From sequence record NC_042013.1: DNA of 64,000 nt, one strand, 5' to 3'. Within the stretch, counting starts at the first letter, position 1. The number at the start of each line of letters is the position of its first letter. Positions 4,333-60,893 of the stretch are shown one piece after another. Made by a program: the position numbers and the translations under genes. Under the pieces are notes generated by a model. The model was not told the DNA's origin and did not search any database. It saw nothing but the letters and a program-made list of their open reading frames with translations.

Positions 4333-4407
4333 GGGAGTGTGGCTGACTGGTAAAGCAGATGCCTTCAAAACATTGAGATGCGGGTTCGATTCCTGTCACT
4401 CCCACCA
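4333..4407 (+). tRNA. tRNA with UCA anticodon (opal-suppressor / Trp-like, atypical)
   Basis: Acceptor GGGAGTG/CACTCCC, D arm, loop CT-TCA-AA (TCA 4365-4367), T loop TTCGATT, encoded CCA; C31xA39 mismatch. Confidence 0.85.
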
Positions 4408-20511: not shown

Positions 20512-20553
20512 AATGTACTATATAACGACATTACCTGTCAACTACTATTTATA
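20512..20553 (-). promoter_or_regulatory. tandem late (TATAAATA) and sigma70 (TTGACA-18-TACATT) promoters
   Basis: TATAAATA 20546-20553; TTGACA 20536-20541; TACATT 20512-20517. Confidence 0.65.
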
Positions 20554-33453: not shown

Positions 33454-33747
33454 ATGATACATTTAGTTTCTCTTTACATAGAAATGGCTGAAAAATTAAA
33501 AGATGCTCATAAGAATAATGGCGACATCGTGTTATATCGCCATTTGATTAATCGTATTAATGAGAAATTTTTTGATCTTGTTGAGGAAGAATTCGGAATC
33601 TCATTTACTCCAAAATCAAGAGATTTGCTTTGGTATATAAATGAAAATGAGCAGGCCGGTTTCTTCCTCATTAGGTTCAAGGATGTCTTAAATCGTCTTG
33701 TAACGTCCAAGCATGTCGATGGTTTCCTTGACTGCACGACCTGTTGA
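33454..33747 (+). CDS. hypothetical protein, counter-oriented
   Basis: Strong SD AAGGAGG before ATG 33454. Confidence 0.5.
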   Translation: MIHLVSLYIEMAEKLKDAHKNNGDIVLYRHLINRINEKFFDLVEEEFGISFTPKSRDLLWYINENEQAGFFLIRFKDVLNRLVTSKHVDGFLDCTTC

Positions 33748-40606: not shown

Positions 40607-40632
40607 AAAAAATAGCCGCATTAAGCGGCTAT
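40607..40632 (-). terminator. intrinsic terminator after repeat copy 2
   Basis: TAGCCGC/GCGGCTA plus U tract. Confidence 0.8.
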
Positions 40633-40641
40633 CTAAAAAAT

Positions 40642-40705
40642 CAAAGCAAGGTTTGTTAATTGGATGTTTCATAAGCAATAAGATAACCAAAAAACTTCGG
40701 CTTTG
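40642..40705 (-). ncRNA. 64-nt repeated small-RNA element, copy 2
   Basis: 25/26 identity at the 5' end and 16/19 at the 3' end with 20276..20338. Confidence 0.65.
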
Positions 40706-40722
40706 AAATTACATATTACCCG

Positions 40723-41019
40723 TTAAAGGGTAGTATTGTCAATAATTTTATATCGAATAATGTCATTTTCTGAACCATAATGATCCCAAGGAACCTCATT
40801 TGATCTTACGATGATAGGGGTATCATTTCCACGCCGCACAATCATCACCGTTTTTCCACTAACGTTAGCAGGATAATTAGACGTATCACAACCACACCAC
40901 CAGCGCCAGCCGTCCTCGGCTTCTCTCGTCAACTTTAGAATATATTCGGCCAAAGCATTTGCGGACGAGGAGTTAATATCGTTTGCAATTTCATTAATTT
41001 TTTTATTTAAGTAGTCCAT
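40723..41019 (-). CDS. hypothetical protein
   Basis: C-term W.H.GSENDIIRYK. Confidence 0.6.
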   Translation of the reverse strand: MDYLNKKINEIANDINSSSANALAEYILKLTREAEDGWRWWCGCDTSNYPANVSGKTVMIVRRGNDTPIIVRSNEVPWDHYGSENDIIRYKIIDNTTL

Positions 41020-55931: not shown

Positions 55932-56132
55932 ATGACAAATAAAGAAAAATTAGTATCAGACCTTATAGCAAGTAAGATTAACATTACGTCTTTCGAGTAC
56001 GAAATGGGTAAATTAGGCGTGCACGTTGTTAAGCCACAGGAGGCAGCGGTAGCTGCTTTCTATACGGATGAACGAAGATATTTTCCAACGGTAAACGAAT
56101 TTGATGTTGTTGTTGGGGGGTATTTCGGATGA
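55932..56132 (+). CDS. hypothetical protein
   Basis: SD AAGGA; between gp5 and tail lysozyme. Confidence 0.55.
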   Translation: MTNKEKLVSDLIASKINITSFEYEMGKLGVHVVKPQEAAVAAFYTDERRYFPTVNEFDVVVGGYFG

Positions 56133-56746
56133 GTTGCGATCCAAAAATGACGGGTGCTGGAAAATCATCCGGCAACTCATCTGGCTCTGGTGGTTCAGGT
56201 GGTTCAGAATCGAACGGAAGTGGCGGAAATAATGGATCAGGTGAAGGCGGTTCTAATGAGAAGTTAGCTAATGATACAACTGAGGCTAATATTAAGTTTA
56301 ATAAACAACGCGTAGACGAAATTACAGCAGAGATGCGAAAAAAAGGTTATAACGATATACAAATTGCGGCTGCACTTGGTCATTGGAAAAATGAATCTGG
56401 ATTTAGACTTGATGCTCTTAATAGAGGCGACGGTCGTGATGGTTCAGATTCCATTGGTCTTGCACAATGGAATAGTTCACGCGCTGCTGGACTTAAAAAT
56501 TACGCTGCTCAAAATGGATTACCCGTTAATTCTGTTGCAGCACAAGTTGGATGGTTCGATTATGAAATGAAAAATACTGAAAAAGGCGCTGGATATGCTT
56601 TTAAAAATGCGACTACAGTTGCTGAAGCAAGTTGGGCAATGAACAAGTATGAAAGATTTCAAGGTTATAACTCAACCACAAGTTCACAAACGATTAGTCG
56701 CTTGCAAAATTCGAATACCTTCTACTCGTATATAACCAAAAAATAG
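56129..56746 (+). CDS. phage tail lysozyme (Phage_lysozyme2-like) with N-terminal Gly/Ser linker
   Basis: AALGHWKNESG, SIGLAQW, AQVGWFDYEM. Confidence 0.8.
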   Translation: MSCDPKMTGAGKSSGNSSGSGGSGGSESNGSGGNNGSGEGGSNEKLANDTTEANIKFNKQRVDEITAEMRKKGYNDIQIAAALGHWKNESGFRLDALNRGDGRDGSDSIGLAQWNSSRAAGLKNYAAQNGLPVNSVAAQVGWFDYEMKNTEKGAGYAFKNATTVAEASWAMNKYERFQGYNSTTSSQTISRLQNSNTFYSYITKK

Positions 56747-56769
56747 CATAGCTATGTCAAATTTTAATC

Positions 56770-56798
56770 TTGACGTTGCTGTTTCAACCTGATACATT
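56770..56798 (+). promoter_or_regulatory. sigma70 promoter of candidate sRNA
   Basis: TTGACG-17-TACATT. Confidence 0.6.
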
Positions 56799-56885
56799 GG
56801 TGTCATCGATACTGAATACAACCGACTGCTTGATAGTTCGTGTGCTTAACCGGTTTGCTTCAACCGCGTATTCAGTATCGACACC
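56799..56885 (+). ncRNA. structured sRNA candidate with repeated UGCUU loops
   Basis: Perfect 14-bp closing helix 56806-56819/56868-56881, two inner hairpins. Confidence 0.65.
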
Positions 56886-56890
56886 CCCTC

Positions 56891-56942
56891 TTGACTCCAT
56901 ATACCAACCGAGATAATATCCCATATGAAGGAGATACATATG
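56891..56942 (+). promoter_or_regulatory. promoter plus start-codon hairpin
   Basis: TTGACT-17-TAATAT; CATATG-AAGGAGATA-CATATG. Confidence 0.6.
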
Positions 56943-57224
56943 TGGTATTTTAAACATGACGCAATTCCGAATACATTTATTGATCGTTATTTTTCAATAA
57001 GGGTTGATTCAATGTGGTGGTCTTATGAACACAACAAATTCGTAGAAACTATTGGGGACGTTGGTAAAAAAGGTGCTGCTTCATCAAAAAGCATTGGATC
57101 ATTCAAAGCCTTCAAGAGATTTTTGAGAAAGCATTCGTATCTTAAAGGAAAAACGGTATTGTTAGAATCGAGGTGGTCACATAATAACGTAGTTGCAAAA
57201 TGGATTGATCATGAAAATAGGTGA
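56940..57224 (+). CDS. hypothetical protein
   Basis: SD AAGGAG. Confidence 0.65.
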   Translation: MWYFKHDAIPNTFIDRYFSIRVDSMWWSYEHNKFVETIGDVGKKGAASSKSIGSFKAFKRFLRKHSYLKGKTVLLESRWSHNNVVAKWIDHENR

Positions 57225-57498
57225 AATGTATAAACACAGAAATGCTGTTATTCAAATTCACAGCATTCAAGAGGAAACTGTCAGCATTAAATTATTCTCC
57301 AATGAAATATATCTGGATACCGTAGTAAAGTCTGAGTTACTAGAAGACATAAATGATGGCTTTTATAAGCCTATGTCATCAACCGAAATCAAGTATTTCA
57401 TTGATGATAAAGTCGATTTTTACGAAAATGCTATTACCAAAAATTTCAAAAATTATAATAGCATCATAGAGACACTGAAATTATCAAGAAACCAGTGA
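57211..57498 (+). CDS. hypothetical protein
   Basis: Operon packing. Confidence 0.55.
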   Translation: MKIGEMYKHRNAVIQIHSIQEETVSIKLFSNEIYLDTVVKSELLEDINDGFYKPMSSTEIKYFIDDKVDFYENAITKNFKNYNSIIETLKLSRNQ

Positions 57499-58191
57499 TT
57501 TCATCAAATAATTATCCAACTCTTGATGTGTTGGGAATACAACCCCGTACATTCTTTGTAAGTTATAAATTTTATCGTTATTTATTACAGAGATAGGTTC
57601 AACTCGTAAAATTTTAAAGCTAGATCCTATCTGACCAACAGCATTAACATTCGGCCCTTTACACAAGTCCCACCAAGAACCCTGTGAATAAGTTATCACA
57701 TCATTTCCAGATGGAATTCCGTCGAGGATTTGAATTTTGTAAGGTTCATCTACAGTTGTGAAATATTCACGTAATTCGTCTCGATTGTTAACAAAACGTT
57801 TGAATTTAGCGTTACGTTCTACCAATTCTAACATCTTAGAGGTTACTTCATTTATACATATAAAGCCGTCATATTCAAAGTCATAGAAAAATTCAACATT
57901 TTCAGTGCAGCAATTTGCAGTTTTTAGGTCTGGATACAATAGCATAACGGCTTCAGACATAACTCGTGATGTTGAATTTCGCAAAGCTCTCGCAGCTATC
58001 GGATCATGTTTTGAGATATAGCGTATATGGGAATCTGATGTTATGGGGGTTGATAAATCAGACAATACGCCATTGATTTCGATGAGAATTATGTTCTCGT
58101 CAAAAATGTTCAAATGTTTAAGTATATCCTCGCCCGATGAATTGCGTGGATATGTAGTAATTGTACCGTTATCCAATGTCAACATTATCAT
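57484..58191 (-). CDS. stand-alone ThrRS N-terminal (TGS + editing) domain, catalytic His substituted
   Basis: FFYDF, YKIQILD, DLCKGP, LQRMYG align to ThrRS N1/N2; ends at TGA TAA where the catalytic core would begin. Confidence 0.85.
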   Translation of the reverse strand: MIMLTLDNGTITTYPRNSSGEDILKHLNIFDENIILIEINGVLSDLSTPITSDSHIRYISKHDPIAARALRNSTSRVMSEAVMLLYPDLKTANCCTENVEFFYDFEYDGFICINEVTSKMLELVERNAKFKRFVNNRDELREYFTTVDEPYKIQILDGIPSGNDVITYSQGSWWDLCKGPNVNAVGQIGSSFKILRVEPISVINNDKIYNLQRMYGVVFPTHQELDNYLMKSLVS

Positions 58192-58249: not shown

Positions 58250-58275
58250 AGGCCGGTTGCCCGGCCTCTTTTTTT
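58250..58275. terminator. intrinsic terminator
   Basis: AGGCCGG-TTGC-CCGGCCT plus T tract. Confidence 0.75.
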
Positions 58276-59735: not shown

Positions 59736-59749
59736 TTGATTTATCCTTT

Positions 59750-59829
59750 GAAGGTCTTACCTGCCCGAAAACTATCAGGACTTATCTGCCTTCCGCTTGA
59801 ATAACACCATTGTCATTCAAAGCTATTTA
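59750..59829 (-). promoter_or_regulatory. late promoter and structured, pseudo-symmetric 5' leader of the vWA gene
   Basis: TAAATA 59824-59829; 9-bp hairpin; stem with twin GGCAG(A/G)TAAG loops. Confidence 0.55.
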
Positions 59830-59834
59830 TGCAG

Positions 59835-59868
59835 AAAAGGGACAGCCCATTTCTGAACTGTCCCTTTA
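59835..59868. terminator. hairpin terminator
   Basis: AAAGGGACAG/CTGTCCCTTT. Confidence 0.75.
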
Positions 59869-59890
59869 TATCATAGTTAATTAGTAAAAG

Positions 59891-60857: not shown

Positions 60858-60886
60858 AAAAAAAGGGTTGGAAAACCAACCCTTTT
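60858..60886 (-). terminator. hsp20 terminator
   Basis: AAAAGGGTTGG/CCAACCCTTTT. Confidence 0.85.
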
Positions 60887-60893
60887 CAATCCA

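Follow-up and report, generated by a model that had tools for sequence, protein, structure and literature searches.

A conserved, probably promoter-driven structured RNA element between gp701 and gp703 of the jumbo phage Atu_ph07

The gp701–gp703 interval

The window (the whole stretch of DNA analysed) comprises the last 64,000 bp of the genome of Agrobacterium phage Atu_ph07, a Rak2-like jumbo myovirus of 490 kb whose host is A. tumefaciens C58; it corresponds to positions 426381–490380 of NC_042013.1 with 100% identity. The element under study is located in a 193-nt gap that extends from gp701 to gp703. The gap and its borders contain the following features (window positions):

56129–56746: gp701 (205 aa), tail gene, the last in a baseplate/tail-lysozyme operon (gp696–gp701); its stop codon ends at 56746
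56747–56769, plus strand: A/T-rich block directly 5′ of the P1 −35 hexamer (…GTCAAATTTTAATC)
56770–56798, plus strand: promoter P1, TTGACG (56770–75), 17-nt spacer, TACATT (56793–98)
56784–56900, minus strand: gp702, a 38-aa CDS placed across the element by the RefSeq annotation
56799–56804, plus strand: stretch between −10 hexamer and stem, including GGUG, the 5′ half of an outer 4-bp helix
56805–56882, plus strand: core RNA element of ~77–78 nt, a predicted three-way junction with a 14-bp closing helix around a 48-nt interior
56806–56819, plus strand: 5′ arm of the closing helix, UCGAUACUGAAUAC, perfect complement of 56868–81
56820–56867, plus strand: interior, with three copies of UGCUUNA (56827, 56843, 56856) and three of AACCG (56820, 56848, 56862)
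56821–56843, plus strand: hairpin 1 region, with several competing registers, including CGACU/AGUUCG with loop GCUUGAU
56851–56866, plus strand: hairpin 2, CGGUU-UGCUUC-AACCG
56868–56881, plus strand: 3′ arm of the closing helix, GUAUUCAGUAUCGA
56882–56890, plus strand: post-stem stretch CACCCCCUC (CUCUUCCUC in clade 2), pyrimidine-rich and G-poor, without a U-tract
56891–56919, plus strand: promoter P2, for gp703, TTGACT (56891–96), 17-nt spacer, TAATAT (56914–19)
56940–57224, plus strand: gp703, a small early gene with ATG at 56940, encoding a 94-aa ORFan with the invariant basic motif SFKAFKRFLRKHSYLKGKTV

The gp701 product is Gly/Ser-rich and contains a Phage_lysozyme2 domain (E = 1e-22); it is annotated as a 'tail length tape measure protein' in RefSeq and as a 'PE-PGRS virulence associated protein' in GenBank. 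Homologues of gp703 form only two clusters among 5.8 billion clusters, and both adjoin the element. Considered as a candidate partner of the element, the protein was set aside: it has no Pfam and no PHROG match, leads from the ESM Atlas are weak, and its AlphaFold2 model is poor (pLDDT 61). The next gene, gp704, is annotated at 57373–57498 (41 aa) and probably under-called: the gene calls of all relatives include a 95-aa ORF instead (plus strand, 57211–57498, with the start at 57211), for which alignments show 64–86% identity. The element, gp703, and the 95-aa ORF constitute a cassette whose parts are always found together and are missing from more distant relatives. Only ~560 nt of genes lie downstream of the element before the convergent gp705 is reached. 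The latter (57484–58191, minus strand, 235 aa) is annotated as a threonyl-tRNA synthetase, although its length falls well short of that of a complete synthetase and only positions 1–234 of the 643-position profile phrog_18916 are matched; by eye, the sequence resembles the N-terminal portion of such an enzyme, with the TGS and editing domains. According to the Atu_ph07 paper, the phage is devoid of tRNA-Thr and tRNA-Asn.

Six metagenomic relatives carrying the element were available for comparison. Five were reached through gp703 homologues: a 492-kb contig (L027), which is 95% identical to Atu_ph07, and four contigs that make up clade 2 (L023–L026; 79% overall DNA identity to Atu_ph07). The sixth, L004, was reached through gp701 homologues and, at 96% identity, is too close to inform. 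The alignment thus consists of seven sequences, three of them distinct and effectively two independent. In L005–L010, likewise found through gp701 homologues, the element is absent and the position is occupied by another gene or shows no gap, and among INPHARED phages no close relative was detected by DNA or by tblastn. Four-fold degenerate sites in seven flanking genes are 45.6% identical between the clades (n = 691), that is, near saturation. The 3′ half of gp701 is mosaic in Atu_ph07—79% identity to L004 and L027, which are themselves 96% identical—and the right-hand boundary of the mosaic segment falls at ~56729–56738, where the conserved block begins.

Promoters

A first-pass annotation of this DNA had assigned the element its own promoter, TTGACG-17-TACATT at 56770, and the next gene a separate one at 56891. 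Both are present, and both have kept their hexamers in the relatives. At P1, which also features an extended −10 (TG two bases ahead of the −10 hexamer), the hexamers are invariant in all seven sequences and variation is confined to two spacer positions (27/29 identical; spacer 15/17). At P2, 17 of 29 positions agree between the clades; TTGAC and TAAT.T are retained while the spacer is scrambled (~6/17). The A/T-rich block 5′ of P1, which contains the palindrome ATAGC-ATA-GCTAT spanning the gp701 stop codon, is identical between the clades at 23 of 23 positions, against 35–42% identity at flanking-gene four-fold sites, and may represent an UP-like element and/or an operator.

The pattern TTGACN-N16-18-TAnnnT matches the genome at 173 sites, 83 of which precede a Shine–Dalgarno site and an ORF within 8–75 nt; for control boxes (permuted) the proportion is ~10–20%. 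Within the window there are 31 matches, about half of them intergenic although intergenic DNA constitutes 16% of the sequence, and most of the intergenic ones end 21–35 nt ahead of a start codon. A generic promoter scan yielded promoter-like sites no more numerous than in shuffles, and the T4 late-promoter motif TATAAATA is not enriched (8 matches, 8.6 expected). P2 fits the Shine–Dalgarno/ORF class, since the distance from the end of its −10 hexamer to the gp703 ATG, 21 nt, lies in the range usual for Atu_ph07 (21–35 nt). P1 is of the same promoter type, but is an orphan without an ORF behind it. Both are intergenic, correctly oriented, and conserved in their hexamers, and they appear to fit the σ70-type promoter of Atu_ph07.

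A parallel to P1 is provided by four tRNA genes of the phage (Val-aac, Arg-tct, His-gtg, and Cys-gca), each with a dedicated TTGACN-N16-18-TAnnnT promoter (genome positions 288577–288604, 317571–317599, and 446892–446921, the last being that of tRNA-Cys at window 20512–20541, plus one upstream of tRNA-His). These promoters end 6–10 nt before the mature 5′ end, which means that the tRNAs would be made almost leaderless; the 3′ flank of tRNA-Val contains no obvious terminator. For P1, the corresponding distance to the 14-bp helix is 7 nt. With the usual distance from −10 hexamer to start site, transcription from P1 would begin at A56805, the nucleotide just before the helix.

Sequence and fold of the element

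The fold of the element is statistically unusual. The folding energy is −30.4 kcal/mol for the 87-nt stretch (z = −4.06; none of 200 shuffles as good), −26.3 kcal/mol for the 78-nt core (z = −4.47), and −28.7 kcal/mol for the clade-2 version of the core (z = −4.42). The perfect 14-bp terminal helix described in the first-pass annotation was recovered by direct reading and by an inverted-repeat search (56806–19/56868–81); five of its 14 pairs are G–C, and pair probabilities reach 0.98–1.0 except for the terminal U56806–A56881 pair (0.83). Its proposed prolongation to 18 bp across a 3-nt bulge is found in Atu_ph07 (GGTG/CACC), but it is paired in only 67% of the alignment cells, being broken in clade 2 and L004, and with a start at A56805 it would lie outside any P1 transcript. 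Of the two enclosed hairpins that had been drawn, CGGUU-UGCUUC-AACCG is stable (~0.9; pair probabilities 0.69–0.92), whereas CGACU/AGUUCG is just one of several registers, with pair probabilities of 0.3–0.76 and several suboptimal folds within 1.3 kcal/mol. In the predicted fold, the closing helix and hairpin 2 are therefore robust and hairpin 1 is thermodynamically ambiguous. The opposite strand folds equally well and G–U pairs are absent, so it is the promoter alone that assigns the strand.

All three UGCUU and all three AACCG copies counted previously are in place. Threefold occurrence of a single pentamer within 48 nt is nothing unusual (the window has 92 cases, shuffles ~52), but two independent triple pentamers within 55 nt are found only here in the window, with 0.11 expected per 64-kb shuffle. 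The composite TGCTT(N)AACCG has no other occurrence in the 490-kb genome, and TGCTT is not enriched in intergenic DNA.

In neither clade did a terminator scan find an intrinsic terminator beyond the stem. The stem itself was also considered as a terminator and dismissed: only 5 of 14 pairs are G–C, the interior is branched and 48 nt long, and CACCCCCUC stands in place of a U-tract. Real terminators of Atu_ph07 are canonical, as exemplified by those at 58250–58267 and 60860–60887.

Conservation between the clades

The interior is identical at 48 of 48 positions in all seven sequences, and each helix arm at 13 of 14 positions between Atu_ph07 and clade 2. The two substitutions, A56815 to G and T56872 to C, affect pairing partners and convert an A–U into a G–C pair, that is, one compensatory change in the closing helix; that the two core substitutions should be pairing partners by chance has a probability of ~0.003 by our estimate. 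Overall, 74 of the 76 nt of the core agree between the clades (P ~5e-23 at four-fold-site identity). The loops, on whose conservation the first-pass annotation had staked its reading, are 100% identical, as is the junction, compared with 46% at four-fold sites. Identity at 48 of 48 positions becomes unlikely (5% level) if more than ~4 interior positions are neutral, and nearly every interior nucleotide must hence be constrained. Purifying selection at the nucleotide level is thus very strong. Pairing in the 14-bp helix is kept in 100% of the alignment cells; with three distinct sequences and a single covarying pair, the shuffle control (154/500) is not significant, and the inner hairpins, which never vary, give no covariation information.

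Conservation drops outside the helix, to 4/7 between −10 hexamer and stem (56799–56805) and to 6/9 in the stretch that follows it. The profile, in which the A/T-rich block, the P1 hexamers, and the RNA are kept and identity collapses in the P2 spacer, looks like that of a promoter followed by an RNA gene. Since gp703 (74% amino acid identity between the clades) and the linker diverge freely, the element is far more constrained than the gene that follows it. Conservation of this degree proves that the element has a function but not of which kind; a very recent and precise gene conversion of the block could conceivably be a source of the identity. Other intergenic blocks are highly conserved as well: at 59736–59890, between the ClpS gene (gp708) and gp707, a block with a strong hairpin is 96–97% identical between the clades. 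High conservation alone therefore does not signify a small RNA. Four-fold sites of ClpS are 77% identical, as compared to 46% pooled over the seven flanking genes (ClpS left out), which suggests lower divergence or recent exchange.

The same data bear on whether the element merely forms the 3′-end structure of the late baseplate operon gp696–gp701, namely an RNase III-type processing site combined with a barrier to 3′ exonucleases. Intercistronic RNase III hairpins of the T7 type are a precedent for such processing sites. The element begins 60 nt past the end of gp701, the intervening stretch is free of terminators, a perfect 14-bp duplex could block exonucleases, and the 18-bp helix of Atu_ph07 can form only if transcription starts upstream of P1. 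However, relatives do not keep this outer extension, a helix would suffice for blocking or cleavage without any invariant 48-nt interior, P1 is itself conserved, and distant relatives finish the same operon with an ordinary hairpin or have no gap. We regard this role as quite improbable.

Coding potential

The region is annotated in RefSeq as encoding gp702 (CDS 56784–56900), and the minus-strand frame is indeed open across the element in both clades. Nevertheless, gp702 is very probably not a gene, and the chance that the 38-aa protein is what the region encodes appears vanishingly small. In L004 its ATG start has become ATA, start and stop both differ in clade 2, and no Shine–Dalgarno site is present ahead of the start. 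The frame contains non-synonymous substitutions only; synonymous ones, expected at about half of the four-fold sites, are absent. The ORF is not called by gene callers in any relative and has no protein family match. The element is non-coding, and the spurious gp702 drops from the reference annotation.

Searches for related RNAs

No Rfam family matched at the gathering score; at E ≤ 10, two meaningless matches were obtained, both outside the structure of the element. Neither blastn over the record nor a covariance model based on the element (R1) detected paralogues in the 490-kb genome or in the loci of the relatives, both returning the element itself only. Scans of IMG/VR, JGI metagenomes, and GTDB genomes with exact patterns for the stems or the interior retrieved only the phage's own IMG/VR record. 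A literature search turned up no study of the promoters, RNAs, or transcriptome of Atu_ph07.

A tRNA or tRNA-like identity was rejected, as ARAGORN and Rfam RF00005 report only tRNA-SeC/Sup and tRNA-Cys in the window. The former (4333–4407) is a tRNA-SeC with anticodon UCA according to ARAGORN and an opal suppressor tRNA according to the Atu_ph07 paper. Mimicry of a tRNA was likewise set aside: the anticodon arm of tRNA-Lys(CUU) is matched over 11 nt only marginally (score 22 against a shuffled maximum of 18.1±2.1) and in a different structural context. The stretch UGCUCUUUAAC bears only a marginal resemblance to boxA/NusB-like sites; boxA is not enriched, and TGCTT(N)AACCG is confined to the element.

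A role as DNA

The motifs may also be read at the DNA level, with TGCTT(N)A/AACCG and the inverted repeat—at −45 to −120 from the P2 start site—serving as sites for a regulator of P1 or P2, or with the whole element constituting a recombination junction. Conservation of the P1 spacer (15/17) and of the 23 nt ahead of P1 goes far beyond the needs of a promoter, and TGCTTNA is the core of the T4 MotA box, the third copy in the element, TTTGCTTCA, fitting the published consensus (PMC2988021). In contrast to the middle promoters of T4 that depend on MotA, the three boxes all lack a −10 hexamer spaced at 12±1 bp. Nor were homologues of MotA or AsiA found by tblastn (best E-values 0.40 and 0.24), although remote ones may exist, and the genome shows no promoter class of the MotA type: TGCTTNA-N11-13-TAnnnT precedes genes no more often than control boxes do (5/31). 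The MotA-box reading was rejected on these grounds.

As to recombination, PeSLs of T4-type phages are short, multi-copy promoter/stem-loop motifs that flank many variable ORFs (PMC2839356, PMC4122927). The locus shares with them an early promoter (P1) and a stem-loop (the helix) in a variable region of a T4-related genome, followed by P2, and a recombination boundary that coincides with the edge of the conserved block, the divergent 3′ half of gp701 ending exactly where the block starts. Unlike PeSLs, the element is single-copy in 490 kb and has a large invariant interior. Moreover, the compensatory change links arms 62 bp apart; it is predicted by RNA pairing and unneeded for sites in duplex DNA. 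A DNA-level role is therefore improbable, and, like the 3′-end/RNase III role, seems less likely than either an RNA gene or a leader.

Leader or autonomous RNA

More weight attaches to the question whether the element is ever separated from the mRNA downstream. As a cis-acting 5′ leader of a P1–gp703–gp704 transcript, it would never be released and would act on its own transcript, possibly as a put/EAR-type modifier of the elongating RNA polymerase, as a 5′-terminal helix protecting against 5′-end-dependent decay, or as the operator of a regulator, which may be the basic protein gp703 itself. Precedents exist for the first two roles. The 5′ hairpin of ompA is a protective stem-loop, and the put RNAs of HK022 and the EAR RNA of Bacillus mediate processive antitermination, put consisting of two tandem stem-loops. 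Like put and EAR, the element would be an RNA of ~70 nt with more than one hairpin, directly 3′ of a phage early promoter, without ORF or terminator, and constrained in both sequence and structure. It differs from put in forming a closed three-way junction and in being followed by two small genes, with no recognisable terminator and with a second promoter in between.

A leader would agree with the lack of a terminator between the element and gp703 in either clade, with the same-strand genes that follow immediately, with the fact that the element, gp703, and the 95-aa ORF are never found apart, and with the position of the helix at the predicted +1, where protective 5′ stem-loops work. On the other hand, P2, which is under selection in its own right, separates the element from gp703, so that gp703 can be expressed independently of the leader, and the linker from the element to the ribosome-binding site varies freely. 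A stabilising hairpin would not require 48 invariant interior nucleotides, the ~560 nt of genes before gp705 contain no terminator for an antiterminator to overcome, and gp703 evolves much faster than the element. We consider a leader possible though rather unlikely.

The independence and selective maintenance of P2, together with the free divergence of the linker and gp703, favours an autonomous RNA, whereas the missing terminator and the strict co-occurrence favour a link to gp703–gp704. By sequence comparison the element is genuine: it is non-coding, had not been annotated before, is under strong selection, and is restricted to the Atu_ph07 lineage. Most probably it is a promoter-driven structured RNA, laid out like the promoter-driven tRNA genes of the phage. 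It shares with those genes a σ70-type promoter 6–10 nt before the closing helix of a small, highly structured RNA and a helix that pairs the 5′ and 3′ ends, and, with the tRNA-Val gene for instance, the lack of a dedicated terminator. In contrast to tRNAs, its closing helix has 14 bp, and it possesses neither CCA nor the signature of a T- or D-loop. Other promoter-driven stable RNAs of phages are RNAs C and D of T4, whose function is unknown. We rate as about even the chance that the element is a new RNA gene, non-coding and confined to the lineage of Atu_ph07 (genus Polybotosvirus).

As such a gene, the element would be transcribed by the host σ70 RNA polymerase starting at the strong promoter P1, ~7 nt past the −10 hexamer (A56805), so that the transcript begins at the foot of the 14-bp helix. 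The first ~77 nt would then fold into a closed three-way junction with one solid and one flexible hairpin. The interior, with its three UGCUUNA and three AACCG copies and probably a tertiary fold, would be read in a sequence-specific manner by a protein or RNA partner. Since there is no terminator, the 3′ end would presumably be made by processing, probably trimming back to the helix as for the terminator-less tRNA genes of Atu_ph07; Rho may act on the C-rich, G-poor tail, and P1 transcription may run on into gp703 and gp704. Release as a discrete RNA, action in trans, and the nature of the partner are what we infer from this layout.

Among the possible roles is that of a decoy or sponge. The first-pass annotation had called the RNA sponge-like by analogy with CsrB/RsmZ. 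It is supported in part: judged by the cross-clade conservation, the element is genuine, structured, non-coding, under selection, and equipped with a conserved promoter of its own. The analogy itself does not hold. As in CsrB, RsmY, and RsmZ, copies of a short motif are distributed over a hairpin loop and single-stranded linkers of a compact, structured RNA behind its own promoter. However, the motif is UGCUU instead of GGA, it is present in only three copies, and there is neither an intrinsic terminator nor a match to the Rfam families of CsrB, CsrC, or RsmX/Y/Z. GGA does not occur in the 78-nt RNA of Atu_ph07, and clade 2 has a single GGA inside the closing helix. Furthermore, in sponge RNAs of the Csr/Rsm family the repeated motif is conserved while the linkers typically drift; here the linkers are as invariant as the motifs, a pattern that simple titration does not predict and that speaks for a more tightly constrained RNA than a Csr-like sponge. 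That the 77-nt three-way junction, made from a strong dedicated promoter, is a jumbo phage decoy for an RNA-binding factor is unlikely, though the three UGCUUNA copies that it would use are real and invariant. No UGCUU-binding protein was identified. Candidate targets would be a nuclease of the RNase E type or one directed at anticodon loops, or another UGCUU-reading protein of host or phage. Such a decoy would be an RNA-based takeover or counter-defence device without counterpart among described RNA families.

To our knowledge, a function is known for very few non-coding RNAs of virulent phages and for almost none in jumbo phages outside the Pseudomonas models. The comparative support is unusually clean in the present case, with an invariant interior, a compensated helix, saturated neutral sites around it, and a well-defined promoter, and the host strain C58 is genetically tractable. 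A trans-acting RNA would open a way to a new phage–host RNA interaction, and a cis-acting one would represent a new kind of promoter-proximal regulatory RNA. Together with the tRNA genes, the locus suggests that Atu_ph07 transcribes single stable RNAs from dedicated promoters.

Other structured sites in the window

Two further structured sites lie on the minus strand of the window. At 33565–33687, in the 292-nt gap between gp670 and gp671, a long irregular hairpin is predicted (−31.9 kcal/mol, z = −4.57). At 40608–40742, upstream of the peptidyl-tRNA hydrolase gene gp680, a σ70-type promoter (40742–40713) precedes a structured stretch of ~65 nt and then an intrinsic terminator of canonical form (AGAUAGCCGC-UUAAU-GCGGCUAU and a run of Us). 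With UGCUU in a small hairpin loop, the latter site looks like a classical promoter-plus-terminator small RNA candidate.
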